NCBI GenBank assembly: GCA_037379345.1
Contig: CM074515.1
Coordinates: 22,072,001-22,136,000, forward strand
Length of the DNA: 64,000 nucleotides
Direction of reading: 5' to 3'
Source of the DNA: Perna viridis
Lineage: Eukaryota
The position numbers and the translations under genes are program-made. The notes under the pieces were generated by a model, which had not been told where the DNA came from, searched no databases, and saw only the letters and a list, made by a program, of their open reading frames with translations. Position 1 is the stretch's first letter. Each line of letters starts with the position of its first letter. Of this stretch, positions 6,001 to 51,016 are shown in pieces.

Positions 6001-9000
6001 CAACCATTCACCAATGTATGAAGGAAATTGTTAAAAAAAACTGAGGCGTTATCCAGGCAATGGCAACAACATGTTATGATGAAAGCAGGGGTCAAGCTAC
6101 TTGAGAAACACAGGGTGAAGTGACTTCTCTTTCAGAGAGACACTAGGGAGAAGTAGGGATGATCAGGGAGAAATGAATGCGCATGTGCATCATTTACTAA
6201 TGCTTTTTAAAATATATGTTACTTACAGTACACGCACACAATATAAGCAAGCATTTTCATTTATTCATTTTCTTTTATTGAGATAAATGTTACTTTTTCT
6301 TTAAGCTACAATGTACATATGTAAGTAACTAAATATTTTGGACAAAATAAAATCAGCCTGCTGACTGAATGATTGACATGAAACTGAATTTCTAATCCAT
6401 ACATCTCCCCTTACCAAATTTATTACAGCAAAATTAATATATGATTGCACAAAGCAATGCTTCTTGCAATGCATTGTCCTATTGATTTTGTCTTTTTTTC
6501 AGCAGCACTGGAATGGAAAACAGTGGCATTCTGATGGAATTTTTATTCTGTTTTTTTTCCTGATCCCACTTAATCCATACTGATTTCTTGTTATAAGTTG
6601 ATCAAGAGTATCAATAATCATGTTAAAAATTTATTACTGACAAATCAAGACTGAAACTTTATTGACACATATTGTAGTGGTTGGTATGATCTCATCTCAA
6701 GCTTAAGAAATGTTTCGTCTAAATGGAGAATTTACTGTTCTGTTATGAAACACGAAGATCAAAAGGTACCCTTCGGGTTTATACTGAATAATCAATATAG
6801 GAAAAAATTTAAATGAAGTCCAAAGAACCCACACAACAAATTTGCATGTTTCATAACGAAATGTGAACGGTAAAACATGAATTATCGTAAGCTGAAGTGA
6901 AGAATGTTCATTCCGTATCCTGTCTTAAATGTTTGAAACAAAAAGCTGATTAAAATACTTGCTTGTAACTGATAATTCGATAGATTTCAAAATTTTTTAC
7001 AATTTATTTCCTCGAACAGGTACCATTTTTTTTTAATTGTTATCAGAAGAGAGATAACACTGGTCAAAATACTGCTAAGAGACGGAATACAGTCCTGAAC
7101 AAGGGCGATGTCTGAAAATGAGAGGGCAACTTCACTTTGCTTTTGGCAACTCCAGGGCAACTATTTTGCCTAAATCACCCAGTAGTGTGAGCCCTGGATG
7201 AAGGTAGACGGACCAAAGGATAAAAAAAACTATACAAATCTTACCATTATTATTTGTCTGTCTGCCTTCTCCTGAGCCATATAGGGCCTCTAATCTCTGT
7301 TGGTTGGTCCTGTTCACTGGTGGAGCTAACTGATTGTCCTCATTAAGATTATTCAATAATTCATCTAAAATACATGCAATATCATTAATAATAATCAAAA
7401 CATACTGTGTTGTCATATACAGAATAATGGCAGTTTTGAAGTCGAATGAGAAATTATCACAGTGAACCCATCAGGGTGAGAGGTGATGTTCTGTCAAAAC
7501 TGATAAAAACTGATGTTATTCTGTTTATTGGCAACATCACAGTTGATTTGATTTGACATTGTCTGTGAAAATTGCCGAAATTTTTAAGTATCACAGCAGT
7601 ACAAAATGTAGCCTGAGAAAGAAACTATCAGGCAGGCAGAAAAATAGAAACACAATCAACTTGCCAATAAAAACTAATGAAAAAATGAAAAACTACATGT
7701 AAAATTATGTTCACAATTATCTACAGAAATGAGTTCACTTAAGTCAAATTATAAACTTGATTAATCATAATACATCATCTAGAGAACAATAAAACTTGCT
7801 TTAACAGGGACAGGAGTTACAAGTAATAATTAATAACAAACAGGTTAAAATTTTTGAGACTGATTAGACACTAATATAGTTGGTTATGACTGATGATCTT
7901 ACCAATATTTGTAGGGTCAAAACCTGGAGGAACTAAGACAGGAGCCCTAGGAGACAAAATATTTTGTGCTATTTCTCTCTCTTCATCTCTCCTTATTTCT
8001 TTTCTCAACATGGTGTTCATCTTTCTATCCCCAACATCAATTTTTTCCCAAGTTGTACTTTTCTTCTTGTCTGTTTCTGAAGTTGATTCTTTTTCATGCT
8101 TTTCACAAGAGAAACCTTGACTACTCAACAATTCATTTTCCATATTTCTCAAAGCCTCATTTATGTTCAGCTCCTCCAAATCAGGCAGGCTTTCATTGTC
8201 CTGATTTCTATTGTCTGATTCAAATGATACGGATTCTGATTCTGTAACTTGTGTCCAACTTGAAACACTTTGTTTAACAGGAGAAGTTGTTTCAGTACGT
8301 TGTTCTCCTTCTATCACAAGTTCAGTCCAGCTAGAAGCATTTTTCACTGGTTGTGGCTTAGGGGAGGATTTGAAAACAGAATTTTGTTGTATCTGGAAAG
8401 CTAAATCATTGTCATACATTGATTCTGAAAATTCAGGTGCCTCAATATTGACCCCAGAAAGAGAAATTATGTCTGGATCTTCAATACTTGTGTCTAAATC
8501 TTTGTCATCATCTAATACTGATGATTTTATATTCCTGTGGAATATAATTGGTTCTTCATTGTCAGAGCTCACCTGTTAATGTAAAAAAAAAGATACTGAA
8601 AACTATGAAGTATAATGCAAGACATACAAAATTTAACTTAAAAACACTAACACCATTATTTTTTTAATGTTCATCACATAAGAAAGGTCATTATTAATCT
8701 AATTTTCATTTTTTTAATAGAAATAATTCCAATTGACCAGATTGAACAAGAACTGTGAATGACATACTCAGTGTGATACTGACCAGCTTCCATAACAATG
8801 AACTATGAATAAAAAAAACCTGTTACCCTAAATTCTAAATAGCAGGTAAATATGTAGCCAATAATAAAAACACTACTGATTCAATATAAAATCGAACATG
8901 AAGTTGCAAGTATTGCCTTGCTAGGTATGTTCTCGTTCTAAATAGTGAAGAATGGTAAAGTCCACCAAAACAGCAAGTTGATATCAGAAAGCCACATACC

Positions 9001-30880: not shown

Positions 30881-33413
30881 GTAGAATCGCTTTAAAAAAA
30901 CCGTTGAACTAAGGTCACGTGGTCTATTTGTTGTCCTTAGTTACAACTGTGTACCCGTCTACATTTCAAATATATATCATTATTTGGTTTATAGCATGGC
31001 ATTTAAGTCTTTATTCCGTTTACCCAACTGTCAATATACTGGAACTCTACAACTGAAGGAATTGAGAAGTTTGGAATTGAGGACACCAAAAATGAATCGT
31101 CAACTCGAACTGGCTTGATTAATTAATTAGACCGGTAAGTTAATTGAATTAGTTCAGTACAATTGATTGTTTACTTCCGGTATCATTGATATTTGTTTTT
31201 CAAACACATTTCAATGCCCACGCGATACACTTACGGAGAGCTACTTTACAATTGATTGAAAGTAATTTCTTTAACTTAGGATGTCGATTTAAACTACTAC
31301 ACATTTAATTCGATTTTAATTGAGTAGAGTATTAAATAAGTTGTGGACAAGTTATGTTTTAGTTTATAAAGCTCTTTATGTCATTTATATTTCTGCCAAT
31401 CTGATAATTCTGCTACTGTATTTATATCATAAATAGGTTCTATTTATATACTTCAAGTCAACTGAAAACCTCCTTATTAAGTTTATTGACAAGCAATTAT
31501 TATCTTTACTTATATGCATATTACGCAAGAAAAAAAAACGTGTTTAACAAATGCAAAAAAAAATATATCTCAAAGCAATGTATGGATAAATAATTAAGTA
31601 AACAATTAGTACTGTGTTATTAAGACAAGTGAATATTGCTTTAAAAAACATTTTTCGTCTTAAAAAATGGTGCCCCAGGTTCTGGCTCTTGACCCGCCAC
31701 TGCATATAAACCAATAGATGTCAAGACAATTAGTATCAGTATATTCGGTAATTGCTTAAATTTTCCGTCATGCGCACTTTTGTCTAATAGAAAATTGTCG
31801 CGTCAATATTTACAATTCTCGTCAAAACATACGTACACAGTATAGTTACTCGTAAGGGCAAGCTTTTTGTCCCCTATCCGTATACCGGTAAAAATTTACA
31901 CACTGGTATGGCCTGGAAAATAGTAGTTAAAAATTATTAGCTTGTCATGCATATTTAATGGTCCTTGAAGCATATCATAGTCTTCTATTTGATCGTTCGG
32001 TGTCCAGTTAGTATACAATAATTTCAAGAATGTACAACTACGTCGTCAGTTTTATTTATTGTACATACCTACTGTATGTTCGTTGAAGCAGATCTTGTTT
32101 ATACCTATGTCAGGCTTATTCTTTAAGCAAATTGCCCGAGCGTTTACACCATTTTTCTTGAGTCATTATGGAGTTTTTTCATCTTTAAGTAGAATATCTT
32201 TTTCAAATGTAAGTTGACTTATATAATATGTTGTGATTGTGCCATTTAGCCTCTTTTCTATCTATTTAGTGTATGTTTTTTTAATCTGAAATGGGCGTGA
32301 ACTCAGGTGCTCAGGAAGGGTTAGCAGTTCCCGCTTATTGAGACCCTTCAAGTGTGCAGAGGAAATGCATATTCGAATAAGGATACTTTGATGACGTCTT
32401 TAAAATATCGGACATGTCGACTACCTAGCTTTGTCGAATTTCGGTTTGTCCGTTTGTCTACTCCTCGTTTTTTATTCCTTATACCTAGGGTTGCACTGAA
32501 GCAACATTGCAAATATGTATCACCAATATAATCTTTTAATATCAGGAAATATAGTACAGAATATCGAACGATTATTATCACAAGAACATGATTTACTGTG
32601 TATCAAGTGCTGTTCTCTGTAAGAAACAAGCAGTGGGTGAATCATGATGAAACATACAAATCTTTCTTATTCAAAATTTTGTATGATACACAGAAATAGT
32701 ATTCATTCCTTTTTGGAGTGTCAGTAATTCGAGGCATTGCAATTGTATCATCAGAGGGAGATAACCAACTTTCAATTATATCATTCTACAGTAACTTTGA
32801 GCTCGCTTTTCTATAGCTTCTCGCACTTCTAAGACGAATGAACTGTCAATTTGTCTTCTACATGTGCCAACATTGTCAAATTCGTGTGGTTTTTTTTCTC
32901 AGCATGATTCATTATTATTCAATTTTGCCTGATTCTTACAGACTTCAGTACTTAAAACATCGGCTACATGTGATAATTAGTTTCACATGTTAATCTTTAT
33001 AAGTATGAAGAAGTATCGTTGCCAAATCATAAATAAAGTTTTGACCATCCCACCTTTAATGACCTTTCATGTATTCATGTGTTTTGTATTGCTGACACTG
33101 GATTTTTTTTTGTGCCGATTCGTACCGTTTTAATTCTTTGGATTTATATACTGATGTAAAATGACGGACATAGCCACAATTCAGTAGGTTTTATTCTCTT
33201 CAGAATAAGTTTTAAAAAATCAGATTCTTTTTGCATCGTTCGTTTTATCCCTTCCCATCTCGTGCGTACTTGTAAAATCTTCACAAATTAACAATAAAAT
33301 TGACGTATTTATTATTAGCATTATGTTTCATAGTTAGTTATTTGAAAATCAGTTCAAAATAGTATACGTATTTAATGAAACCTTTTTCTTGTTTCAGACT
33401 TTTACTACCAAGT

Positions 33414-36400
33414 ATGGATGAACTGGAGGATACGTCGGTCATATTCAAACCAAAGCGACAAACGACGTCAAATGTATCGTCTGGTACGACATCAGAAGAT
33501 GGTGATTATAAGGCACTGAACGCAAAGAGGAAGGTAGGTTGATGATTTGATAGTTCAGTATGCCGATTATTTTTTCTTGTTTTGTTGTCATGTTGTTTTG
33601 TTGAATTTATGTTTGTTTGTTTTTGTTTATGTTTTTGTTTGTTTTTTGTTTTGTTTTGTTTTGTTTTTTATTTGTTTCGACGGTTTTGTTTTTGTTTGTT
33701 TTTGTGTTGTCGCTGTAGTTGTTAAACACTTCTGTTTTATGTTAACTGGATAATGAATAAGGTTTTGTAAATGTGACCTGTATACAATTATGAGTAGAAG
33801 AATGTGATTTCTCAGAACTTGTAGAGAAAAAAAATGTGGGCGTTTTAAACATTTAATATACAACTATTCTTTTGCAGGCTCGATCAAAAGACAGAGAAAG
33901 TTTTGATGTCGCCATATTAGAGACTTCTGAAACGCCAACTGAAATAACGGATGAGCCTACACCAGCATTAAGACGAACGTCGGTCGTTGATACTAGATAT
34001 GAAGAATTCCGAAGAAGGTTATTCAGTGCCGTTGAAGAGGGCAATAAGTCCGAGGTTTCACAAGCTATTACGTCTCTACCTACCAATATATCTCCGTCAG
34101 ATGATGCCCTCAGGGAGACGGTTACAGGGAAAAACATCCTACACGTTGCCTTGGAGAACAAACAGATTGAACTTGCAAGGTATATTATAGAAAACAGTTC
34201 AGCCGATTTGTTAATACAAAGATACAAGGCTGAAATAGACCACAAAACAGCACTCCACCTTATCACGGGATTAAATAGTATTGAACTTGCTAAATCTTTT
34301 CTAAACAAACTTCGCACTAAACAAGCTCAGGTTGATGCGATCAAGGCCGAAACGACTGTAGAAGCTCAGGGACAGCGCCCAAGAAGTCTTTCATCATTTC
34401 ATCTTGCAGCGTTTAAAGGTTACACTGGGTTAGTCAGGCTGTACGTTGAGACTGGAATTGATATTAATTTACTGAACTCCAAACGAGATACAGCGCTACT
34501 TTGGGCTTCACGTTGGGGCCATTTAGAGACCGTCGCTTATCTGTTGGAAATGAAAGCAGATTGTTCGTTAGAAAATGACAAAAACTCAACAGCCCTACAC
34601 TGGGCCGTACGGTATGAACATTATGATGTTGTTTGTTTCCTTTTGACAAAAGGAAAAGCGAATCCGAATCAGGAAAGACTTCAGGGGTTAGTAGTTCCAA
34701 TTGTTTTGGCCGCTGCCCTTGGGAACGCCCGGATAACTGAACTTTTACTTGATCATGGCGCTCAAGTAAACCATGTCATACGTAGTGGCGAGACCCCATT
34801 ACACGTAGCTGCAAAGGAAGGCAACTCATCAGTTGTTGCTATTCTACTTCATCGCAAAGCAGCGGTTAACCGACAAGACGATAATGGTAATACTCCGCTC
34901 ATCAATGCTGCATCTAACAATCATCTGAAATCTGTTGATTTGTTGATGAAAGCAGGAGCAGAAGCAACAATAAAAAACCACATGGGGAATGATAGTTGGC
35001 ATTTTGCTCTGCTAAGTGATAATGACGAAGTCCTTCGCATAATTTGTAAGCATTCAAAAAATTGCAAAATTCCTCATTTGACCGCTGCAAAGCTAGGACG
35101 AGAGAGAAAAATCCAAGTACTACAACAAACTGGCATTGACATTAGAGAGGTCGATGACGATGGAAACTCGCTTCTTCATTACGCAGCTTGTTATGACCAG
35201 GATCAAGTCATTTCTGAGTTTCATCGTCTGGTTGATGTTAATGTTCAAAACAAAAAGGGCAATACCGCTCTTCATGTTGCATGCCTCAAAGGACACATTC
35301 AGTCCATTGAAGCCCTGACGAACTGCAAAGCAGCAGCTGACATTAAGAACAAAGATGGCAGAATATCTTTGCACATTGCTGCCTTGAGTCCTAACACCAC
35401 ACCAGAAATGGCTTCTCATCTCATTGAATACACGATAAAATCACATGCCTGGGAAAGTCTGAACTCTGTCGACATAAAAGGTGACAATGCATTACATCTT
35501 GCAGCTGAAAATGCAAGTCCAGATGTGCTATGGGAGTTCAGATATGTTCGCTTTAAAGACGTAGATAAAAAGGGAAATACCCCACTACACGATGCGGTCA
35601 GACCAGAACACCCGGAAGTTTTAGAAACAATGCTCGATATATTCGAATCGATGCAACGTGATGGAAACATTAACACTTCTAACAGACAAAAAGAAACCGT
35701 CCTGCACCTTGTTGCTTCTGAAGGATTTCAGGAAAGTGTCACCAGGATTGTTTTTCTTGGTGGCGATTTAGCATCTCAGGACATTAATGGCAACACCGTT
35801 CTCCACAGATTAATACTCGAAGCTACACAAACAAACAGGAGTGGAGAATTTCGGCATATCGGAATGGTTGATACCCTTTTGAATTGTGCAGCAAGATGGT
35901 GGTGTATGCGAAACAGTCTCCAAATACCAAATAAAGCAGATGATAAGTATTTGGACTACAAAAGACAAGCAGTTACTTACCTTATATACGAAATTAAAAA
36001 CCATGACAATATGCCAGTGTTAGGATTGGCATGCAGAGAAGCAGCATATGAAATACTATCGAAATTAATGCAGGTTGAAGGCGTCACATGTTTCCGGGAG
36101 GACAACTGCATTTTGTATGACGTAACTTACTTTACGCCAAAAACTTGTCTTTCACAGAAAAAGTCTTTCTTAGGACAAAGGATTGAACAAGCACCAGATT
36201 CTCCATCTAAACCCGTCACCAAAACTCAAAGTGCAACATCGTTTCTTCAATTACTTACAAAACAACAAAATAAACAACGAGGAGCTTGCGTCCTTAATAT
36301 TCCACCTTTAAAGAAGATAGAGGAAATGTTTAAAACCGTTTGCATGGTTACATATATGGTCATGATGATACTTCATGTATTGTACATGAGCGTTTTTAGC

Positions 36401-37477
36401 TATGCCAGCATAACACTATTGGGAAAACTTCGAAACGATACAGATTTGCCGAGTTCGGAATTTATATTGGTATATGCTTGGGTGCCTATAGAACCATTTG
36501 TAATTCTTATATATGTTTTGGTTTCGTTTATTAGTTTGCTCAAACGAGGGGATCGAGTAACTTCTATAAGCTATCGATTTATTCTTCTATTCATGACTTT
36601 TTCTATCCTGGCAATTGCCTGGTTAGTTCTTGTCGGTCTTAGGAATGATAGTAATGACTATGTTCTCGCTGTTGTGCTTTGTATCGGTTGGTTGCTGACG
36701 ATTGCATTTACTGGTGGAATCAAAGGAATACACTATTTCTGGCGCATGCTTAGAAACATGATTGTGAAAGACATATTTCGGTTTCTAGTGTTTTACACAA
36801 TAGTGTGGTTCGCATTTACTTTCGCATTTCATGCTGTCTTCCAGATATCTCAGTCTATAGTGGATACTTACCCTACTCCTGGTGATACACTGTTCATGGT
36901 GTTTAATCTCATGATCGGGATGGCAGAGATCTTTGACGACAACTATGAGGACGGGATGTCCTCTGTTGGAAGGTCCACTGCATACAGCAAAGTTTTGTAC
37001 ATGCTTTATATAATATCTTCAACAATAATACTACTCAATCTCTTAATTGCTATGATGAACGACTCGTATTCAAGCATTTTGGCACATGAGAAAGTTATCT
37101 GGAGAATAGATTCAGTCGATATTGGAATCAACATAGAAAAAACTATACCATGGATTACATCCCCTTTTAAATGGTTACGCAAAAGGACTATGAACGATAA
37201 AACGATTGACCAAATAGGCGAGCGTTGGTTTGTTCGGATTATCGATGGAGAAACGATTGGCAAAGACAAAAAAGAGGACGCCTCTTTGGCTGAATTTATA
37301 AAAATAGAACTAGATAACCAAATTAAAAACATTGACAAAAGAGTGACAGGTCTTGAACAAAACATGAAAGACACACATCTGAAATTAGATGAAGCTTCTA
37401 ACAAGCTGGAATCTTTAATAGAATTGTCACGAAAGAAAAAGTCAAAAAAGGATAAAAAGAAGCATAAGGAAAATTGA
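33414..37477 (+). CDS. TRP cation channel, TRPV-like pore module with long (~17-19) ankyrin-repeat N-terminus; paralogue A (~1239 aa)
   Basis: Coding exon 1 33414-33533 (MDELEDT..NAKRK|gtaggt) is spliced in phase 0 to one 3600-nt exon, 33878-37477. Features: many ankyrin repeats (GETPLHVAA, GNTALHVAC, QDINGNTVLH), six hydrophobic segments, DIFRFLVFY (S4-S5/S5), pore LMIGMAE, S6/TRP region LLNLLIAMMNDSY..W, a C-terminal heptad region and a polybasic tail. Confidence 0.9.
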
Positions 37478-37811
37478 AAATATGAATGTGAGCATTTAGA
37501 AAAACAAAATACAGCATTGGAAAATAGTTTTAGGTACGACATTCCTTCAAATTAACATACTCTGCCATTGAGCAAGTTCCTACATTTTTATTTATTCAAT
37601 ACTCATGCATGGAAGGGCTATTTACTTATATCCTAGATATTGGTGAAAAAACTCTCATTATTTCTTCATTTTTTTCTATGTTTGTAGCCAGGAAAGTCAA
37701 TGTCAATACATATTTATATATAAGTTGTTTTACTTATTTACTTCCGTTTGTTGTTAAATCTGTTTAGTTCATTATTATACGAGGTACGCATTTATATTCT
37801 TGATTATAGAA

Positions 37812-37930
37812 AGTTGCAGATCCAGGAATTCCGAAAGTGGGGGCGCTGACCGACCTAAGGGAAACACTCCAGTGATTTTCAATTTTTCCCATGCAATTAA
37901 CCAAACCCCGCCCCCTTGGATCCGCCTATG
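37812..37930. mobile_element. GGATCC-type MITE downstream of TRP paralogue A
   Basis: gcagatccagg..ggggg ... cccccttggatccgcctatg. Confidence 0.6.
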
Positions 37931-39248
37931 CAGTGTATGGTTTGGAGGGGATGGCAAAAATAAAACTTAATACCACAATGAGGAGAGGCTTAATTATCCT
38001 GCAGAGATCTTTGGTATCGAAAAGTTGCACAATGCATAAAAGAGTTTTGAATAAATATTACATGGATTACTAAAGTAGTACTGACAAATACAAAGGAAAT
38101 GTACTATAATTGTTGCCGTAAAGCAAACGCACAAAACGAACAAATAACAAAACCTTTCTGCTTTGTGATAATGCGGAGTTGTTTAAACTTTTTAAAGCAG
38201 GTTTGTGGTCGACTATGTGTTGTCACGAACAACTTCACCATTCTGGTTTTATCAATTAACGACGATCATGATGAAAATTAAGATCAGGGTTCCCATAATT
38301 CTGGAGCAAAAATATACCAAGAAAACTGACCTAATACCATAAATAATACAACCTAACTACAACTAAGTAGTAAACGAGCAACCCCGGGGTCCACTAAAAA
38401 ACCAGGGATTGTGCACCAGTAAAGTAAGGGTCATCTGCTTGTTGCTTTTATGATGGCAAATTCGGATTAAACCAAAGAAGGAATCCACGCCACCGTAAAT
38501 TCAACATCGGTATTATGAAAGACTTCAATAAATCAAGGTTTAAATGATCATCAGAACCAATACACAACAAGAAAAAATAAGCTAACTGTGAGCAAACGGA
38601 ATGGGTTTAAATGAAAAAAAATACCGATGTCCAGAAAATATTTTTGGTTCTATGTGGGGAGGCATCAAAAGTGTCATTTTGAATTCTCGGGTCAATTGCA
38701 TGTTGCTTCTAAAACTCGTATAGATACAATTATGCTACTTAACTGCATATTTTAGGTTTTATTTTTGAGAAACATATTTTAAATGGAAGACTGCGGGAGA
38801 ACAAAAACAGTTCTGTTTTTCTTTATCTTAGATTATATTTGAACTAGTGCCTTACAAGCCAAACTGTATTGTTTCCATTTATAAAACTTTTGGATTGTTT
38901 TTGTTGGTTTTCATTCAGCCACTGGATAATTATTTTAGTTATTACTAAGGAACATACCGTTTCCATCTCGGGGTGGGTGGGCTGGGATTTTATGTTGAGT
39001 TAAAAAGAAAACAGAGGCAACATGTAATATTATTTTTGGAAAATCTACTTTAATAAAAGTAACGATGGAGATATTGAATCATATTTTTATTCGCCATGAA
39101 AGAGTAAACAAAGTTTTGGTCAAATTTTGCATAATATGTAAATTTCAGATTCTAAATGTATATTTCACAAAGACAGCTACGTATTACTTTAGCATTTTCT
39201 TGCATATTACTGGTGCATGTGCGCACCGCCAAAGATCATGATAAGACT

Positions 39249-39424
39249 CTGGGCTGATCTAGATACTTTGAAAAGGAGGAGTACCAGCCGTTGTTCCTCA
39301 GAAATGGGAAAAGCTAGGTCATCATTTACTGGGTTTTTTTTGTCAATATTACACATGAAAATGGCAAATTTTCGAAAAAAAGAGGGGTTGCTAACACTTG
39401 CACCCTCCCCCGGATCCGCCACTG
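39249..39424. mobile_element. GGATCC-type MITE just upstream of, or within the 5' end of, the LINE
   Basis: gggctgatctag ... ccccggatccgccactg. Confidence 0.55.
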
Positions 39425-39649
39425 TGTCACGTTAACGGTTATGGTTAAATAATTGTATAGTGCAGCGATATATATTCAATTCGGTCAAGATGTTTTAGTA
39501 TTTTTTAACTTTAAACTGAAAACTGTCAGAAAAATTTTACTGATAAAAAATTATTTAACTGACAAATTTGAAGTTCTATACCACGTTTCATTAAATCGAA
39601 CTGACACAAAAGTTCAAATTAAACGAAAAAAGATCAGTTTCACTTAAGT

Positions 39650-42600
39650 ATGCAAAATATGCAGCTGATTGATGAAACCTATAAAATCATACGACGAATC
39701 CCAGCTTCAGTTAGTCAGTATACTTTAAAAATGTTATTTAGATCTTAGAAAGAGTAGCCTGGCAAAAAATGTCGACAAAATTACAAACCGTGTGAACGAA
39801 ATAGAAAAAAGTATGGAATTCATGAACGAAAAATTTGAACAAAACCAAACTGATTGTAAAACTATGACATCTTCGATCGCCAGCCTATAGGCCGAACACG
39901 ATGACGTATCAGAAGATGTGGATAAACTTAGAACCGATTAAGATAACCTTTTTGAAAGACACATTGACTTACAAACAAGGTCAATGCGAGAAAATTTAGT
40001 CTTTACAGGAATCCCTGTTCCTGTCGAAGGTGAAACAGAAGACACTGAAGTAGTTATTAAAAATTTTATGACAAACCAAATGCAGATGAAAAGCCCTATC
40101 GAATTCCATAGAGTTCATCGTTTTGGTAAAGAGTAAGGTGTCAAAGATCCACAAAACGGTCGTACACTGTACGCAACCAGACCTATAGTATGTAGATTTA
40201 AATGCTATAAAGATCGTGAAACAGTTCGAAGTGCCGCTGCCAATCTACAAGGTACCCGATTCGGTGTAAATGAGCAGTACCCAAAGGAAATTAATGACCG
40301 TCGGAAAGTTCTATGGCCTTTCTACAAGGAAGCTAAAAATCGGCGAAAAAAGCTCATTTCAGGAAAGATAAATTATTTATTGATGGTAGTGAATTTATTC
40401 CACCAGTTACGAGCGAAGCCGATATGGAAACAAATGAGAGACTTCCTACCCGTGAACAAGGAGCCCTACCTTAGTTTGAATTGCAACCAACTCGAGGACG
40501 TGGTAGACCCCGCAGAGGACCCCAGAGACAGACATAATTCGGTCAAGGACGATCAACGGTTAATAGACAGAGTTATGACGAGACTAACTCTACCGTAACT
40601 GACGGTCATTATGAAAACCTTGTCAATAATAACAATGTTCTTCCTGAACAGTGTTTACACTTCTTAGTCTTAAACGTTTGTTGTGTTAAGAATAGAATTT
40701 TATACCCTGAGTTTAGAGATCTTCTAAACGAAAATGATATTATTTGTTTAACAGAATCTAAAAAAGATGACTTGGATGTTATAAATTTAGATAATTTCGC
40801 ATTTTTCTACAAAAATAGAAAAACCTTGTTGGTTGTAAAAAGGAGTTTGAAAAACATGTAGTTCCGATCGAGGCAAACTGCCCATACATTCATTGGTTCA
40901 AGCTGAATAAAAATCTTGTAAAATTGCCTAATGATGTTGTGTGTGGATTAGTTTACATTCCACCTGAAAATTATCGATATGCATCAAATGATGCATTTAA
41001 TGAGATTGAATTAAAATTTCAAATTTTGCGAAAGGATTTTTCAAACATTTTTCTTTTTGGCGATTTCAACAGTAGAACTGGTAACTATTGCATTTCTAGA
41101 GAGACAGAAAATAATAATTTTTATTATGAATTTTCTTTTTTGTTTTCTGATATACAGGAATTAGACATTTTGAATATCCCAAGAGATAGAATTTCAGTAG
41201 ACAAAACTGTAAGTAACTATGGAAGGAAATTTTTATCATTTTGTAAAAACGACAATGTGTTTATATTAAATGGGCGAATAGCTGGGGGTAGAAATGGTAA
41301 AGCAACGAGCAGAAATACAAGTGTTGTTGATTATACGTTATGTACTGCAAATATAATGCACAGGGTAAATAATTTTGAGGTGATGGATTTTAGCAGTCTC
41401 TATTCAGATATACATTCTCCTTTACATTTAGTTGTTGATATTCATAAACATCATGACTTGACGAGAGTTATGAAGAAATGCGAACTCATTATTCTGACAA
41501 AATAGGTCACTGGGACCAAAACGGATTAAACGACTATAAAAATAATAATCATCTTAACGGAGTTGAAGAGCTAAAATCATATACTAGTTTCTTATAAAAA
41601 ACTGGTGATTTTCAAAGTGCTGATCAGGATTGTATAAATAATATTGTGCTTGAAATAACAGATGTTTTGCTTTATTCGGTAAAACAAACATTCGGTGGTC
41701 GGCGGAATAGAAATGTCGTGAAAAATAATCCTGATAAAAATCAAACCAAAGATTGGTTTGACAGGGATCGTTATAGAAAGAGAAAAGATTTTCGAAAAGC
41801 GCGAAGATTGTACAAACATTATGGTTCTAATATTTTTAAATCACGCCTTAAGGCTAGTGAAAAGATCTATAACAAAGCTTTAAATAAAGTATTAAGAATT
41901 ATAAGTTTGAACTGAAGAAAAGGATGAAATCTTTGAGAACTAATAATCCTCGTGAATACTGGAATGTCCTGAATAGGGATAGACCAGTGCACAGTAATGA
42001 TATAGAAATCGATACTTTATTTGATTATTTTAAGGAGGTAAATAAGAATTATGAAGATACATCAAATGTAATTCATCCTGGCGACATTATTGTAAATGCT
42101 GAGCTTAACAAAGCTATTACTAAGGAGGAAGTTATTAGAGCTATCAAAAATGCTAAAAATAACAAGTCTCCAGCAGATGATTTTGTAATATATGAATATT
42201 TATGTGCTACTGTTGATGTTATGTCTGATGTATATGTGAATGTATTTAATATTATACTTGATACTGGAATAATGCCAGAAGCATGGCTAAATGGTAACAT
42301 TATTCCACCTTTTATAAACAAAGGTAGTAAAACTGAACCTAAGAATTATAGACCTTTTACAATTTTATCAAATCTTGGAAAAATCTTTACTTCGATATTG
42401 AACCACAGGCTGTGTAACTATTTAGAAAATAGTTCTATATTACTCCTACAAACAGGATTCAGAAGTGGATACAGTATATCTGATCATGTATTTTCTTTGT
42501 ATGCCTTATTTGAAATATCAAAGGTCAAACGAAGGAAATTACATTGTGCATTCATCGATTTTCAAAGAGCGTTTGACTCTGTTCAGAGAAATTTACTAAC

Positions 42601-44183
42601 GAGTAAACTATTAGTTTATAATATCAATGGAAAATTCTTTAAAATTATACAAAATATGTATAATAAAATTAAATCCAGAATTATTTTCAATTCAAACAAA
42701 TCAGACTATTTTCCATGTGAAATAGGTGTTCGCCGAGGCGAAAACCTACCTCCTGCTCTATTTTCTGTTTATTTAAATGATTTACAAAAGCTTCTCGCCT
42801 CTAAAAATGTGGTGGGTCTTGATTCTATCACAACGGATTTAGAATCTGAACTTAATATGTATTTAAAAATATTTTTGTTTTTATATCCCGATGACACGGT
42901 ATTACTTGCGGATAACAGTACAGAGTTACAAAACATGTTAAATGAGTTTCAAAACTACTGTGAACAGTGGCATTTACTTGTCAATGTCGACAAAACAAAA
43001 ATACTTATATTTTCATGAGGTGCAATAGCAAATAACCTCCATTTTACTCTAAATGGTAAAGAAGTTGAGATTGTAAAAGATTACAAATATCTTGGTTTAT
43101 ATTTCGCTAAAAGTGGGTCCTTTTTAACAACCCGAAAATATCTATACGAAAAAGGTTTGAAAGCGATGTATGGTGTATTGAGAAAATGTAGACGAAACAA
43201 GCTATCTATAGACTGTCAACTAGACATTTTTGATAAATGCGTTGTCCCTATATTACTATATGGCTCTGAGATTTGGACATTTGAAAACACGGACATTTTA
43301 GAGCATTTACATTTAAAATTTTGCAAAAATATTTTACATTTAAAACAGTCTACACCAGACTGCATTGTATATGCCGAGCTGGGACGATATCCTTTAGAGG
43401 TAACAGCAAAGGCTAGATTGGTGAATTTTTGGGGTAGCCTTATAACAAGGAAAGACAGCAAAATTTCTAGTCTGTTGTACAAGTTGCTGTTTATTAACTA
43501 TAATAACTATGGTATTGATAACAAGTGGCTATCATTTATCAAAAACATTTTAGACAACTGTGGAGTGTCTGTTTTATGGAATATGCAATATGCTGACAAA
43601 GGTGCTTCAAAATATATTGAACAGATTCTTAAAGATCAGTTTACTCAATTGTGTTTATCTCAGATAAACGAATCACCAAAATGTCTTTGTTATAGAATAT
43701 ACAAAAAAAAATTCAATTTGAAAACTATCTTGAATTATTACCAAACAATTTGTTATTTACTCTATGCAAATTTGGATGCGATAGTCACCGTTTTCCAATC
43801 GAGACAGGAAGGTGGCAAGGCGTTCCTAGGAACGAGAGACTGTCAACTTTGCGACTCGAGTGACATCGGTGACGAATTCCATTACATTCTATCTTGCAAA
43901 TATTTTTCTTTAGTTAGAAAAAAATTACTTCCTGAGTATTGTTGGAAAAATCCTAATATTTTTAAGTTTGATGATCTGTTCCACACAACAAATATTATAG
44001 TTTTAGAAAAATTAAACAGATTTGTCAAGTTGATAAATACGAAAGTCAGTCCTCCGGGTTAATCTTCTACTAAATTTATCACGTATTGTATTTTTCACAC
44101 ATTCATATAATTGTTATACATTATTGTAGATATGTTTCTCTTTAAGTATGTAATATGTAGTTTATGAGAATAAAGTTCATTCA
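39650..44183 (+). mobile_element. Decayed near-full-length non-LTR retrotransposon (APE-RT LINE, probably RTE-X/RTEX clade)
   Basis: ORF1 remnant at ~39.7-40.4 kb: coiled coil, then DLQTRSMRENLVFTGI..FHRVHRFG..RPIVCRF..FGVNEQYPKEI. ORF2 is broken into 40924-41505 (APE: FGDFNSRTG, VVDY, SDIHSPL), 41646-41915, 41924-43018 (RT: FIDFQRAFDSV, GVRRGENLPP, YPDD) and 43157-44062 (CQLC..IGDEFHYILSC). The 3' end is AATAAAGTTCATTCA. Multiple stops and frameshifts. The 5' boundary is uncertain and may extend to ~39.15-39.2 kb. The clade call is from recalled motifs. Confidence 0.88.
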
Positions 44184-45452
44184 GAAAATCGTACAAATTT
44201 CAGATTTAATTAAATGCTCCAAAAACCACTGCTTGTTCTTTTGAATTATATTAATTTATTAATTTATATATTATTAGATTTGAATATAAAAAAAAACTAG
44301 TCAAGCCAATTACGGTTTATTGTCTGTGATACATTTTAATAATTACATGTATGAAACCTGTTGCAACCCGCCATGACATACCTGTAAGTATCAATTATTA
44401 AAAAATATTTTGCCAGCCATATTAAAGAGGTCTGTAAATAAATATACTTTATGAATAGTTTAAAGTCATTGGTTTTTCAAGTTCATTCAAGCAATACAGT
44501 GATTGGTATGAATTTAGACATTTAATACTTCCCAACTTTGTTGTGTTAAACGTCCGAACACATGCGTAGAAACCAAGAGGGATTAGTATGGTGTTTGTAA
44601 ATATTATCTTTACTAATAAATGCTGTTTATTCCAGCGATGTCCGAATAACACGTGGGCGTTTAGTCGAAGAGGAATAAAACATAACAGATGGACGTTAAG
44701 TGCATTTAATATTAAGATAATGCAATTTGCAAGATGCACATGATAACAGCACAGTAGTAAAGACAATGCATGACGTTTAACAAGGGGACCGGCGACATAA
44801 AAGGTATGCTACTTCCTCCTGTTATATGATGATGTAGACACTTTACTAAATTGTAGAAGTGTCGGGGTTGTATCTCGCTTTCGTGGTAGAAAATTTTGTA
44901 AACTTTTGGCAAAATTAAGCAATTGATAGGCTGAAACCGTCCTTTTTCATGAATTTGTGGATCCATCGTGTAATTTGAAACTATGTATCCTAAGTAAAGA
45001 GTCGTCACATTCTGAGACGTTTATATTGTGTTTCTTGATTATTTTTTTTCTTCTTGTTGTTCTGGATAATTTCACTGTAGAACAATAGTTTTGATACAAG
45101 AGTAATCAAGGGAACCAAGGTTATAGTGGTAATTAAAAGAATGTAATCCAGGGACAAAGTCCAAACATGGAAAACAGACATACACAACAAAGAACATAAA
45201 GTAACTAAAATCATACATACAAAGTAACAAAAGCAAATGAGCAACTAGGACTCAACTAAAAACTGGGAGCATGGACCAGGTGCACCGGTAGGACAAGCTT
45301 CAATAACTCTAATCTTTGAATGTAACATTTGTATTAAGAGAGAAAACCGATATATTACATGACAGTGGTCACACATTGTCTTTCGAAAAAAGTTCAGTTA
45401 TCTAAGCGGCAATTTTTTAAATGTGCATTTTTTATTTGATATTTTTCTTCAG

Positions 45453-48400
45453 ATGGATGAATTTGAGGGTGTACCAAACAGAATAAAATATCTGAAATTT
45501 GAAGCATTTCATTTATCATCAGTCTCAGCCTCAGATGATGGCGATTTCAAAGCATTGATAGCAAAACGAAAGGTTAGTTTTGATTATTTATCGTCTGGTG
45601 TTAAGGAAAACGAATGCAGATACTGTATCGGGGTTGTTTATAATATTTTAAATAAAACTTGTCATTACGGGGTCATAGACATGACCCTCAGTAAGCAGAT
45701 TGTATATATAGTCCTTAGTGCCATAAATGTTTCCAAGAAGCAGTTTGAAGTTTATTACATGTATGTCGTGTCGTGCTTGGTGTTGTCCAGGATAGTTTTC
45801 AACCCTGTGCAAGCAAACTGACGCTCATTTGGGACCGCCTTCAAACTTTATTCCAGATTCGCCACTATTTTCAATAAGAGCTAGATGATAACACAAGGAC
45901 TTGATGTCATAAGTTAGATCCATTTAAATGGCAAAAATTTTACTAAAATGCTGTTTTTAACATTCGTTTCATTTTACATGACCATGGCCATACAATAAAC
46001 GCCATGTCCAAGTCGTTGTGGATTATAACCATGGAAACACCCCATTTTACGGCTGTTAATTCACGTTTGGAAAGACTTCTGTGAGTCGTTAAGTTTTAGC
46101 GACTTCCTGCACTCATAAATTTCATTTAGGTGGACGGGGAAGTGATATTCGTCTTCCACAATGTTTTGTCAACGCACATCGTACCTTGTCGAGTCAGGAG
46201 CCAGGATCTCATGCAGGCCTTTAAATTGGTGGCGATTGAGTATGCTATTGTTTTCCAAATGAACTTCAACCTCCATGACTTGCTTGACTTAATTCCTTTT
46301 CCCCTCGAGGAGATTGGGGCTGCTGACAAGTCTCCTAAAAAATTCTCTGTCCTGGGCTGATTGTTCGACTGTTCGCCTCCAGGTCTCTTTTGGCATTCCT
46401 CTTTTACGTTTTCCTTCTGGTGTTCATGTGAAAGCAGTCCGTGGGTGCGCATTGGTATTTATCCTTAAAATATGGTCTATCCATTTCCATCTGCAGATCT
46501 TAATTTTATGGCTAATGAGTTCAACTTGGGCTGTTTCTCTCTAGTTTTCGTTGGAGATTTTTTCGGACTAGTAGACCTTAAATAATTTTTCTAAGACACT
46601 TATGATGGAATGTGTCATGTAGTTTCTCTTCCCCCTTTGTCATCTTCCACCTCTCGCATCCTTATAAAAATATAGATATAACGTTGGACTTGAGGAGTTT
46701 TATCTTTGTCTTTCAGTTGATTTTGCTGTTACTCCTTATTTAGTTTAGCTTGAAAAATACTGTTCGTGCATGTCCTAGCCTTCTACGCATATCTTCATTT
46801 GTACCTCCTGTGTTACTGACTGTTGCAACTATGTAGGTAAAGCTGTCAGCATTTTATACATCCCTTCCCATTATTGTTAGGAGTTGGCTATTCTTTATGT
46901 TGAGGCGCATTGCTTTCATTTTTGCAGCATATATTTCAGTCCTGTTGATGTTGCGTAGTTGTTTAAATTATCCACTTTTCTCTGCATCTGGTCTTTTGTG
47001 TTTGAGAGAAGGGCAATATCATCTACAAAATCTAGATCGGCAAGTTTTGTTGTCATTTTCCACCTTAAACCGGTGTTGTTATATGTGGTGGTTTGTCTCA
47101 TAATCCAATCAATGATAAGAGAGAACAGAAAGCCTGACATGTTGCACCCTTGCTTTACACCCGATTTAATGTCGAACCATTCATATACACTGTACCATCA
47201 ACAACTGTATATCTATTGCCTTCATTTATTATCTTGACCATCTCGATAAGTTTGTCTGGTATTCCACATACTTTCATAGTGTTTCTCGACGGACACTGTC
47301 AACCTCTATAGTTGTACTTTACTAACTTTGAAAACACCAGTTTATGACTTATTCATAATTTAGAATTTATTAACTGATAGAAAGTTTAATAAATGAACAT
47401 AAACATCAGAAGAGAATACACAGAACAATAGCAATACAATATAGAATCGATTGAAGAATATACAAGTATAAATTGATGAAGTAGCACATTGTTAGTGATT
47501 CATATTTTAAACATTTTTTTTTCATTGAAGGTCCTTTCAAAAGAACTAGAGAAATGCGAGAGTATTTTTTTCGGAAAAGATCCAGATCAAGAGGGTAACA
47601 TTAATGTGGAACAGGAAGCAGTTAAACAAGTGGAATTTTGTCGCAATATTTACAAATCAAACATTATTGAGCATGAGACAATCGATAATCTGGATATCAA
47701 TCCTACTCTTCATGGTACACCGGAAGTACAGAAAGATGGTAATCATGTAATGCTGCAGGCTGCATTACAAAATGGACATTTGGACATTGCAGAGGAAGTT
47801 ATTGCTCAATGTGATAAAAAATTATTGCTGTTACCGTTCGAAGACTCTAAAACTCCTTTACAGTATATAACAGAAAACGGAAATGTCAAACTGGCGGAGT
47901 GTCTGTTACGGAGACTAGACAGAGACGATGAAAAGCTTGGTGCTATCAAAGCTGAAACAGTTGTCGAGGTTAAAGGTCAACGACCACGAAGTCTTTCATG
48001 TTTTCATTTGGCAGCCTTTAAAGGGTTTACTGAGCTTGTAAAGTTGTACGTTCAAGTTGGTGTTGATATAGATTTTAAAAATTCGAAGAGAGACACCGCC
48101 CTTCTATGGGCATCACGTTGGGGACATTATGAAACTGTAAAATATTTACTTAATCAGCACGCTGATTGTATGGTCGAAAATGATAAAAACTCGACAGCAC
48201 TTCATTGGGCTGTCCGTTATGAGCATTTAGAGGTGGCAAGCCTACTTCTTACTCTCGGTAGAGCTGATCCAAACAAAGAGAGACTACAGGGCTTAGTTGC
48301 ACCAATAGTATTAGCTTCTGCCCTTGGAAATTCCAAAATGGTAAATACCCTGATACAAAATGGCGCAAATCCTAATCACACTATAAGAAATGGTGAAACT

Positions 48401-51016
48401 CCACTACACGTAGCTGCAGCAGAAGGTCACGATGGCGTTTTACTCCTACTTTTAAATAACAACGCGGACATCAATCGCAAGGACGAAAATGGAAACACGC
48501 CTATTTTAAATGCAGCTTCAAATAATCATCTTATGTGTGTTTACATATTGAGTAAGGCGGGAGCAGATACTAACATTAGAAACCACATCGAAAGAGACGT
48601 TTGGGATTTTGCTATCGACAGTGACGATAATACAGCATTCACAATTCTTTGTAAGACATCAAAAACTGTAAACTGTCCTCATCTGAAAGCTGTTAAAATG
48701 GGCCGTATCGATAAAGTTAAAATTGTTCGAAACTGTGGGATTGATATAACTTCTACAGACGTGACTGGAAACACTTTGATTCATTACGCAGCCAACTTTG
48801 ATAAATATAAATTGATTTCAGAATTTTCGAGTTTAATAGACATCAATATTAAAAATAAAAGAGGAAACACAGCATTGCATATAGCATGCTCTAAGGGAAA
48901 TCTGTATTCCATTAAAGCTCTCATTGCTGCAAAAGCACGGGCAGATGTTTCAAATAATGTTGGAAGAATGCCTTTGCATATGACTGCTGTTTCCAGGTGT
49001 ACAACACCTGAAATTGTACAAATATTGGTGGAATATGTGATCAAATCCCACACTTGGGAATGTTTGAATTCGGCTGATAAAAATGGCGATAATGCCCTTC
49101 ACCTAGCTGCAGAGAGTGCATCTCCTGACATCTTGTGGGAATTCAGACACATACGTTTCAAGGATTTAGATCAAACAGGAAATACTCCCTTGCACGATTC
49201 TGTCAGGCCAAATGAAGAGCAGGTTTTAGAAACCATGTTGGATATATTCGAAACAATGCAACGTGATGCTAACATAAATAGTCGTAACAAAAATAAAGAA
49301 ACAGTTTTGCACTTAGCTTGTACAGAAGGTTTTACCGAAAGTGTTGCTCGAATAATTTTTCTCGGAGGTGATCTATCGATTCAAGATCAAAATGGACATA
49401 CCATGCTTCATCGCCTTGTATTGAAGTCATCGAATATTGAGGACGACGTGAAAAAAGAAGCTACAATAAGAGAATGTGTTGGTATGATCGAAACAATTAT
49501 AAACAATGCTGTTATTTGGTGGTGCATAAAGAACAAGTTTCGAATTCCTGACAAAGAGGAATCATATTATACTAAGTATAAACGAGATGCAATTCTTTTC
49601 TTGCTGCATGATATTAGAGATGGTGCTGGACTTTCTGTAATTGGTTTAGCATGCCATTACGCTGCTGCAGACTTTTTATTGAAATGTATGACTATAGAAA
49701 ATATTACGTGCTTTTACAGGGAAGGCATAACTCTATACGATGTTACTTATTTCTCACCGAGAACTAAAAATAGTTTGGATACAGATCACAACGTTTTACC
49801 ATATCTACAAACTCTCGTGTGCTCGTCTGACAGACAAAACGCTGCACTTTCTTTGAATATACCACCACTTAGAAAAATGGAGGAAATGTTTAAAAATGTT
49901 TGCATGGCGACATATTTAGTGCTAATAGTATTGCATGTAACCTACATGAGTGTTTTGAGTTATTCGGGAATATATCTACTAGGTAGACTAAGAGCTGCAC
50001 CAGACGCCCTTGAAAGAGATTACTTATTCTGTTATTTCTGGACCGTCCTCGAGCCTATAGCTATCATTTTATATTTCATCACTTCCATAGGATTATCACT
50101 GAAACGCAGACAAAGTCTTGTTGCATCTTTTCCATGGAAATTTTTCTTGATGTTTTTTGTTTTTGCGGTTTTGGCGATTGTCTGGCTTGTTCTCTTGGGC
50201 GTCCGGAACACTATCAACGACTACATTTTTTCTATACTGCTTTGCCATGGTTGGTTACTGACAATAGCTTTCACAAGAGGTATTAAAGGAATTCATTATT
50301 TTTGGCAAATGTTAAAAATGATTATATTGAGAGACATATTCCGATTTCTTGTATTTTACTTACTTGTTTTGTTAGCCTTTTCTTTCGCATTTCATTCGCT
50401 GTTTCAAATTTCTCAGGCGTTAAGCAGTATTTACTTAAACCCCGGTGATACCATGTTCATGGTAATTAATGTAATGATGGGGTTTGGAGAGGTATTCGAT
50501 GACAACTTTGAAAATGGTTTAAAAGCAGTTGGAAGAACTACAGCATTTAGCAAAGCGATTTACTTATTTTACATCGTTTTAGCGACTATCATTCTACTTA
50601 ATCTGCTGATTGCTATGATGAACGATTCGTACTCGCGAATATTAGCTACCGCTAAAATTAACTGGCGAACGGAATCGGTTAAAATAGGCATAGGTATAGA
50701 AAGAGCGATTAATTGGACAACTTTCCCATTCAAATGGCTCCAATATACTGACATGGACGGCTCTGGTAAGAGATGGTTCGTCAAAGTATATGATAAAGAA
50801 ACATTTATATCTAAAAAAGTGGATGACTCTATCATTGAATATTTCAAAGGTGAATTCAAACAGAGTATAACAAATCAGAGATCTACTCTAGGAAAAATTC
50901 AACAAGATTTTGTTAAGACAAACGATATATTGGAAGTTCAATTACGTAAAATTGGAGACTTGGTAAACTTTTTACATGAAGATGGTTTTGGAGAAAGCGA
51001 CTCGGAAACTGAATAG
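45453..51016 (+). CDS. TRP cation channel, TRPV-like with long ankyrin array; paralogue B (~1201 aa)
   Basis: Coding exon 1 45453-45572 (MDEFEG..IAKRK|gttagt; 120 nt, same length and phase as paralogue A) is spliced to exon 47531-51016. It shares long identical blocks with A (GQRPRSLS.FHLAAFKG, KRDTALLWASRWGH, ENDKNSTALHWAVRYEH, DIFRFLVFY, TIILLNLLIAMMNDSYS). Pore VMMGFGE; acidic tail. Confidence 0.9.
46277..47298 (-). mobile_element. 5'-truncated RTE-clade LINE in the intron of TRP paralogue B, antisense, with target-site duplication
   Basis: Minus-strand RT fragments GVKQGCNMSGFLF, LDFVDDIALLS, RWKWIDHILR and PEGKRKRGMPKETWRRTVE, with a 3' tail aagtcaagcaagtc. Flanking direct repeats tcaacctccat (46266-46276) and tcaacctctat (47299-47309), 10/11 identical. 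Confidence 0.88.

Follow-up and report, generated by a model that had tools for sequence, protein, structure and literature searches.

TRP (transient receptor potential) channels form the principal group of sensory channels in animals and are divided into families mostly according to the appendages carried on a common pore. Canonical TRPVs have six ankyrin repeats and no C-terminal coiled coil, while TRPA1 has approximately 16-17 repeats plus a coiled coil. A stretch of 64,000 nucleotides from Perna viridis (the window; GCA_037379345.1, contig CM074515.1, positions 22,072,001 to 22,136,000, without N) contains two genes, here named A and B, which an earlier reading of the DNA letters alone (the sequence-only reading) had described as a tandem pair of TRP channels combining a TRPV-type core with a TRPA-length ankyrin array and a C-terminal coiled coil. 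The genes were tandem paralogs on the plus strand, 8 kb apart and 51% identical in protein over 1149 amino acids (aa). Comparative analysis made it likely that they belong to a real, conserved, mislabeled, and uncharacterized TRPV-related subfamily, encoding tetrameric channel subunits of the TRPV kind that form a separate spiralian clade, probably distinct from the published TRPVL, and are neither TRPA nor the short molluscan TRPVs. The novelty lies in the unusual architecture of a long ankyrin array and a predicted coiled coil on a TRPV core, the kind of channel itself being already known.

Several described systems share part of this architecture. The lophotrochozoan TRPVC/D or gamma-TRPV clade (Morini et al., 2022, PMC9664204; 2026 cephalopod survey, PMC13402157) occurs in the same phyla with a TRPV-type core, although its proteins in these two studies have 803-899 aa and a short ankyrin domain. 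TRPVL (Peng et al., 2015; Himmel and Cox, 2020) is TRPV-related and lies outside the well-known TRPV clades, as does the A/B family, and has been reported in annelids including Capitella and Dimorphilus, in mollusks by one survey, and also in cnidarians and unicellular holozoans. Residue fingerprints for these channels are available (PMC9242649), in Table 1 of which TRPV is characterized by N-x-L-I-A in S6 with a TRP-helix Trp 17 residues after the Ala, TRPA1 by Gly (S6) and Arg (TRP helix) at the Ala and Trp positions, and TRPVL, based on six sequences, by a Trp located 10 positions ahead of the S6 Asn, by N-x-F-I-A in S6, and by a TRP-helix Trp replaced with Ala.

The membrane part of A was related to TRPV by sequence (residue numbers count from the large coding exon; searches and folds were run on the separate exons, with the first coding exon unjoined). 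When its C-terminal 562 residues were compared with all Protein Data Bank (PDB) sequences, the best 60 matches were all TRPV6, TRPV5, TRPV4, TRPV3, TRPV1, TRPV2, or Inactive (1e-17 to 2e-9), with TRPV6 reaching 1e-17 and TRPA1 not among these 60. BLASTP against pig TRPV6 gave one alignment (residues 164-643, 553 columns, 24% identity, E 3e-18) that was collinear from ankyrin repeat 5 through the linker to the C-terminal strand and in which GGDLASQDINGNTVLH of A aligned with GADIRAQDSLGNTVLH of TRPV6. The motifs that the sequence-only reading had taken as TRPV rather than TRPA were all present and each had an aligned TRPV counterpart, including LYDVT with LYDLT, DIFRF with DLMRF, and LLNLLIAMM...W with the same motif in TRPV6, as well as IGMAE with IGMGD in a frog TRPV1-like protein; RWFVRI of A likewise aligned with RWFLRV of TRPV6. 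The family consensus for the filter, MIGMGE, aligned with the same frog IGMGD, with GMAE in A and GFGE in B as variants. Overall, vertebrate TRPVs (TRPV5/6 nearest by sequence and TRPV1-4 by pore motif) shared with A and B the last two ankyrin repeats, linker hairpin, pre-S1, S1-S6, pore helix, and G-M-(G/A)-E filter (G-M-G-(D/E)-type in TRPV), S6 N-L-L-I-A, TRP-helix Trp, and C-terminal RWF strand. A and B differed from them in sequence identity (17-24%), in falling into a separate clade on a long, fully supported branch, and in carrying approximately 17 ankyrin repeats rather than the six of a TRPV ankyrin domain together with a heptad helix of about 50-60 residues after the C-terminal strand.

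Fold comparisons with an AlphaFold2 model of the A membrane module (residues 690-1135; predicted local distance difference test score [pLDDT] 86, predicted template modeling score [pTM] 0.78) ranked TRPV first. The 44 Foldseek matches shown from ranks 1-50 were all TRPV1, TRPV3, TRPV4, TRPV5, or TRPV6. VIA-align, a Foldseek-independent search of 48,161 representative chains, gave Z scores of 21.3 for TRPV6 (20% identity), 19.6 for TRPV2 (20%), 18.8 for Inactive (17%), 17.6-18.0 for TRPA1 (11-14%), 17.3-17.7 for TRPV1, 16.1 for Nanchung (13%), and 12-15.5 for TRPM, TRPC, and NOMPC (TRPM2 15.5, TRPC 13.8, NOMPC 13.6 with 14% identity). Fold alone hardly separated TRPV from TRPA1 and sequence did, since structure-based identity was 17-21% for TRPV1/2/4/6 and Inactive and 13% for Nanchung compared to 11-14% for TRPA1. 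The assignment of the core to TRPV rather than TRPA was therefore borne out by sequence and collinearity, with TRPV also first by fold and TRPA1 nearly equal. A search of the protein Atlas could not tell the TRP families apart.

These data also bear on the proposal that A and B are divergent TRPA channels, as their automatic NCBI names suggest, whose TRPV-like motifs are convergent or ancestral. A and B do have the cytoplasmic hallmarks of TRPA, namely an array in the range of 14-17 repeats and a predicted C-terminal coiled coil, and TRPA1 is similar in overall shape; the full-length model matched Drosophila TRPA1 with 17 repeats (7ykr) at a Foldseek E of 6e-22, the related module fold reached the Z of about 18 given above, and several orthologs carry a TRPA1-like name. 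The core, however, was not of the TRPA type (S6 N-x-L-I-G, no Trp, closest to TRPA1): A, B, and nearly all their relatives had N-L-L-I-A with a Trp exactly 17 residues on (in A counted from the S6 Ala), where TRPA1 has Gly and lacks the Trp in its TRP-like helix, and both the sequence ranking and the TRPV6 collinearity, which takes in the linker and C-terminal strand as well as ankyrin repeats 5-6, pointed away from TRPA1. The S6 Ala and TRP-helix Trp are also common to TRPC, TRPM, and TRPN, so that this fingerprint rules out TRPA1 and the published TRPVL without proving TRPV. In searches of the PDB with the whole of A, TRPA1 and NOMPC appeared via the ankyrin repeats only and behind ankyrin-1 (ankyrin-1 1e-81, NOMPC 3e-58, TRPA1 7e-30). 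The "hybrid" of the sequence-only reading consequently holds for the architecture and fails as kinship, as the array had no special affinity to TRPA1, being closer to ankyrin-1 and NOMPC, and nothing in the sequences points to domain shuffling from a TRPA gene. A TRPA identity for A and B is highly improbable.

NOMPC (TRPN) resembles A in combining a long array with a six-transmembrane core bearing N-L-L-I-A and the TRP-helix Trp, and was matched by the full-length model (Foldseek 6e-23). It differs in having 29 repeats vs. 17 and in the low module similarity (Z 13.6, 14% identity), and neither the approximately 29 repeats nor the TRPN-type core that mark TRPN were found in A. The TRPN ortholog of this genome was identified elsewhere (L011, G000:C1:54875333-54879592, open reading frame [ORF] 1405..2817; E 1.5e-145 to Drosophila NOMPC), with linker, S1-S6, and TRP region in a single 470-aa exon, and was a distant outgroup in the trees.

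The AlphaFold2 model of the large exon of A (pLDDT 82, built on 51 family sequences) was ordered as an ankyrin array, linker beta-hairpin, disordered loop, S1-S6 with pore helix, TRP helix, C-terminal strands, and terminal helix. A beta-hairpin was inserted after the second ankyrin helix pair, and in addition to the 17 regular pairs the model contained one helical pair at the N-terminus and one ankyrin-like pair within the linker; the 17-19 repeats counted by eye in the sequence-only reading fit this total of 17 plus two extra pairs. The count was taken from the model, as a home-made ankyrin hidden Markov model was overfit and missed degenerate repeats. In the linker, pre-S1 helices followed the ankyrin-like helix pair, the beta-hairpin (738-748, LYDVT), and a disordered loop. 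Strands were predicted in the linker (738-748) and the C-terminal region (1100-1103 and 1116-1122), in keeping with the TRPV arrangement of a linker hairpin joined by a strand after the TRP helix. Hydropathy and the model agreed on six hydrophobic segments, the number of transmembrane segments that had been proposed, and Pfam matches to A and B comprised many ankyrin families plus Ion_trans.

The C-terminal heptad stretch singled out by the sequence-only reading lies within the terminal helix of 62 residues, which in A closes with a polybasic tail (charge +8 in the final 16 residues). Hydrophobic residues occupied 64% of the a/d positions in A and 71% in B, compared to approximately 20% at other positions. 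Across 51 aligned family sequences, the heptad a/d positions were 46-86% hydrophobic vs. 6-24% elsewhere, with at least 50% hydrophobic a/d residues in 50 of the 51 members and 46% in the remaining one, and the residues themselves drifted among members though the pattern was kept. A pattern of this kind is expected of a coiled coil under selection, and the helix is accordingly described here as a candidate coiled coil; TRPV1-6 are not known to have such a helix.

An ancestry within an already named group was considered for TRPVL, proposed as the sister of TRPV, in which case A and B would belong to a lineage that is described though uncharacterized. The TRPVL combination of residues was found in none of the 170 sequences nearest to A, all of which had Tyr, Phe, or Cys at the TRPVL Trp position. 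S6 read N-x-(L/I)-I-A, or nearly so, in almost all of them, and the TRP-helix Trp, which is Ala in TRPVL, was kept in most. The Dimorphilus TRPVL is CAD5123450.1 (PMC9242649) and differs from both Dimorphilus members of the A/B family (CAD5116603.1 and CAD5113657.1), and no cnidarian protein was present among the named search matches, the named family members all being from Spiralia. On the other side, unrooted trees placed the family outside TRPV1/5/6 and the molluscan "TRPV5-like" clade, which is the position of TRPVL in the literature, and TRPVL is known from annelids. Three genes of an abalone survey, one named "TRPVL-like" and two near TRPV but unclassified, are candidates for the Haliotis member of the A/B family; known Haliotis members collapsed into one cluster at 90%, including two isoforms from the same H. 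rufescens locus. On fingerprint and accession, the A/B family appears distinct from the published TRPVL, and its inclusion in TRPVL is considered unlikely. Capitella "TRPAbasal" grouped with nematode TRPA-1 in the tree of its own paper.

The A/B family was also distinct from gamma-TRPV: the A core was approximately 17-21% identical to gamma-TRPV, the gamma-TRPV accessions (XP_033732844, XP_033761183, and others) differed from those of the A/B family (XP_033732060 and XP_046357539), and known family accessions were absent from the supplementary text accessible for PMC9664204 and PMC13402157. No paper was found describing a long ankyrin array and coiled coil on a TRPV core, or functional data for such a channel, in keeping with the "little-characterised" lineage that had been suspected.

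Homologs of A and B were widespread. A word search retrieved approximately 70 related clusters of 1100-1300 aa, and word searches in general returned family members, TRPV5/6, and little else (the search with an annelid query gave 10 matches without informative names). An exhaustive search yielded 718 representatives at E<=1e-3 and 83 clusters (50% identity) at E<=1e-30. Named members, to which the term spiralian refers, were from bivalves (Mytilus at 65-69% identity, oysters, scallops, clams, and unionids), gastropods, and the annelid Dimorphilus, and cluster look-ups added Paralvinella (annelid) and Intoshia (orthonectid); this distribution, with proteins of approximately 1200-1290 aa, supported the proposed lophotrochozoan lineage. 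Database names were "TRPA1-like", "ankyrin-3-like", "ankyrin repeat protein", or "uncharacterized", as had been anticipated for automatic annotation, and truncated models were labeled TRPV1-like or TRPV5. As a consequence of the TRPA1-like and ankyrin-like names, surveys of shellfish "thermo-TRP" channels may miscount both TRPA and TRPV genes.

Only A and B belonged to the family in the whole 723-Mb assembly. Their next relative, on another contig, was a canonical TRPV of 922 aa without introns (L003, G000:C7:16328806-16332591, ORF 256..3024) that grouped with Saccostrea "TRPV5-like" XP_062616864 and is probably of the gamma-TRPV or TRPVC/D type, so that two TRPV-type lineages in this genome are nearly or wholly intronless. 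Trees of the membrane core (a quick posterior mean site frequency [PMSF] tree and FastTree) recovered the molluscan members as a clade (99% in the Shimodaira-Hasegawa-like approximate likelihood ratio test, SH-aLRT), with A and B in a mytilid sub-clade (100%) and annelid-type members placed around the molluscan clade. A clade of vertebrate TRPV5/6, a TRPV1-like protein, L003, and Saccostrea "TRPV5-like" was set apart by a long branch (100% SH-aLRT, length 1.1; FastTree 0.997). Of the S1-S6 phylogeny suggested in the sequence-only reading, the separation from the TRPV1/5/6 clade was obtained; of the reference groups, the trees covered TRPV1/5/6, gamma-TRPV, and TRPN.

Some of these results weigh against a TRPV-related subfamily distinct from described groups. 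TRPA was excluded on the strength of fingerprint residues, structure-based identity, and rankings in the PDB rather than by phylogeny, and TRPA1 matched the module fold almost as well as TRPV (Z 18.0 vs. 21.3). Branch support was SH-aLRT or SH-like only, and with the TRPN outgroup (L011, branch 3.4) the base of the ingroup was a polytomy, so that the family may be the sister group of crown TRPV or one among several lineages that diverged early within TRPV. The "TRPVL-like" gene of the abalone survey could be a member of the A/B family. Finally, the data directly supported the structure of the genes, the expression of A, the order of domains, the TRPV homology of the core, and the conservation of the heptad helix, and we infer the tetramer, coiled coil, permeability, stimulus, and A/B co-assembly, drawing on known structures of TRPV1-6, TRPA1, and NOMPC.

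The gene models were consistent with functional genes, the frames being intact and the splice sites conserved. The proposed span was exact, from position 33414, the ATG of A, to 51016, the last base of the B stop codon. In each gene, the first coding exon, of 40 codons, is followed by a single large exon (Table 1); alignment with Mytilus orthologs indicated that approximately 40 N-terminal residues were absent from both open frames and encoded upstream. The first-exon product of A aligned to the N-termini of these orthologs, and the tail of the B first exon, DDGDFKALIAKRK, was homologous to that of A. Contigs of four runs from four studies, runs only guessed to be RNA, made an exact 344-nt GT..AG skip at the predicted intron of A and extended upstream from 33397; the loose ends of four contigs before this position were one common sequence with a single match in the window, at 31104-31133. 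As the spliced form in small assemblies is what transcripts give, gene A is transcribed and spliced as modeled. Transcription and splicing of B are predicted from its splice signals and frame; with B judged in this way, the two are functional genes in tandem. At position 37179, the genome has G (Arg, large-exon codon 1101) and the contigs of four runs from four studies A (His), as do the nearest orthologs (His), and the difference is probably a polymorphism of the assembled individual.

Table 1. Features of the A and B locus, in window coordinates; residues count from the large exon.
Feature	Position	Strand	Evidence and remarks
Gene A coding sequence	33414-33533 + 33878-37477	+	1239 aa
Gene A open frame	33872..37477	+	does not start with ATG
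Gene A 5' untranslated region (5'UTR) exon	30936..31134	+	donor GT at 31135; 5' limit approximate, from longest contig overhang (199 nt); reached by the contigs that skip the intron
Gene A first coding exon	33398..33533	+	ATG 33414, 40 codons; acceptor AG 33396-33397, donor GT 33534
Gene A intron	33534..33877	+	phase-0, 344 nt, GT..AG; acceptor AG 33876-33877; skipped by contigs
Gene A main coding exon	33878..37477	+	1199 codons + stop, stop-free frame; 3'UTR to ~37701-37707, where the contigs stop
A ankyrin array, 17 regular helix pairs	34136..35911 (residues 87-678)	+	AlphaFold2; Pfam Ank families E 1e-40 to 1e-69
A TRPV-type linker	35942..36292 (residues 689-805)	+	AlphaFold2; aligns to TRPV6 linker
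A S1-S6 domain	36302..37057 (residues 809-1060)	+	hydropathy, AlphaFold2, Pfam Ion_trans, TRPV matches
A pore helix and filter (..MIGMAE..)	~36878-36937	+	pore alignment
A TRP helix	37064..37144 (residues 1063-1089)	+	AlphaFold2, pore/TRP alignments, fingerprint table of PMC9242649
A C-terminal beta-strands (RWFVRI)	37175..37243 (residues 1100-1122)	+	AlphaFold2; align with TRPV6 RWFLRV
A terminal helix, heptad pattern, candidate coiled coil	37286..37471	+	62 residues, AlphaFold2 and a/d count
Gene B coding sequence	45453-45572 + 47531-51016	+	1201 aa
Gene B open frame	47489..51016	+	does not start with ATG
Gene B first coding exon	45453..45572	+	ATG 45453, 40 codons, donor GT 45573
Gene B intron, predicted	45573..47530	+	phase-0, 1958 nt, GT..AG; splice signals and frame only
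Gene B main coding exon	47531..51016	+	1161 codons + stop; A-like architecture, ..MMGFGE.. filter, acidic tail (-6)
Non-LTR (long terminal repeat) retrotransposon remnant, not part of A or B	40924..44062	+	Pfam Exo_endo_phos_2 2e-6, RVT_1 1e-28

The nearly intronless, retrogene-like coding sequence and the retrotransposon remnant between the genes raise the question of whether A, B, or the two together represent retrocopies in decay, or else an ankyrin gene and a TRPV gene wrongly joined in the assembly or gene model, with no working channel being made; B also has a long branch (0.61 vs. 0.10 for A) and an altered filter, and merged models with two membrane modules exist among the database entries of the family (P0005). 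Both frames are nevertheless open, over 1199 and 1161 codons, and both genes retain the conserved spliced 5' coding exon. For A, the ankyrin array, channel, and intron junction were covered together on single contigs of independent studies, and the same architecture and length occur in dozens of species of two phyla. B keeps the residues that are invariant across its six closest sequences and has an ortholog (P0017, 68% identical; the A ortholog is 81-82% identical), such that, if both orthologs share one species, the duplication predates the species split and B is evolving faster. Decay or fusion is barely credible as an account of the locus.

As subunits of TRPV-kind channels, A and B would assemble in fours around a Ca2+-permeable non-selective pore as in TRPV1-4, with which the filter motif of the family consensus is shared. 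By analogy to TRPA1, the C-terminal helices would form a central four-helix coiled coil beneath the pore that holds the tetramer, and the ankyrin arrays surrounding it would serve as a large cytoplasmic sensor or tether, from which force, temperature, or a ligand could be relayed to the gate via the linker beta-sheet and TRP helix. Among the possible stimuli, a mechanical or osmotic one is somewhat favored, followed by thermal and chemical ones on an equal footing and by other stimuli or constitutive activity as the least expected. A and B may co-assemble, as suggested by their different filters (GMAE vs. GFGE) and the opposite charges of their tails (+8 vs. -6).

A more far-reaching reading, which is tentative and on balance doubtful, is that of an ancient unrecognized TRP subfamily of long-ankyrin TRPVs with a coiled coil. 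The long array and coiled coil would then either be the ancestral state of the TRPV/TRPA stem, the short TRPVs having arisen by loss, or be a TRPA1/NOMPC-like cytoplasmic apparatus that spiralians rebuilt on a TRPV core; there is room for the ancestral or rebuilt state because of the TRPN-rooted polytomy with crown TRPVs. On this reading, mytilid A and B would be obligate heteromers like insect Nanchung and Inactive. Independently of it, a TRPV pore and gating core with a cytoplasmic apparatus of the TRPA1/NOMPC type is a natural test of TRP modularity, in particular of the module responsible for stimulus specificity and of the coupling between a long ankyrin array and a TRPV gate, and the nearly intronless genes would be easy to clone and express.

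Family members were adjacent or on the same contig in further bivalves, including Mactra (ACF0H5_012552/012553), Potamilus (CHS0354_027109/027110), Pecten, Mizuhopecten, and Ylistrum, and tandem duplication therefore seems recurrent in the family. Three over-long database models, P0005 (Batillaria, 2051 aa, with two membrane modules of the A/B family) and the amphibian P0069 and P0070 (1423 and 1462 aa), are probably merged tandem genes; the latter two were rejected as vertebrate kin of A and B, as they fell within vertebrate TRPV5/6. P0215, P0236, and P0271 formed a small TRP clade whose membrane part scored 3e-16 to NOMPC vs. 2e-14 to TRPV3 and that shifted between trees as an unplaced TRP lineage. 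Another locus of the genome (L027, G000:C5:43328000-43337000, ORF 1899..6131) encodes an intronless protein of 1410 aa with nSTAND3 (STAND NTPase, 3e-20) and approximately 29 ankyrin repeats, and was rejected as a possible TRPA since this STAND NTPase-ankyrin protein is without a channel domain. The retrotransposon remnant between A and B contains three open frames, encoding an endonuclease, a reverse transcriptase, and a 301-aa product without a Pfam match.

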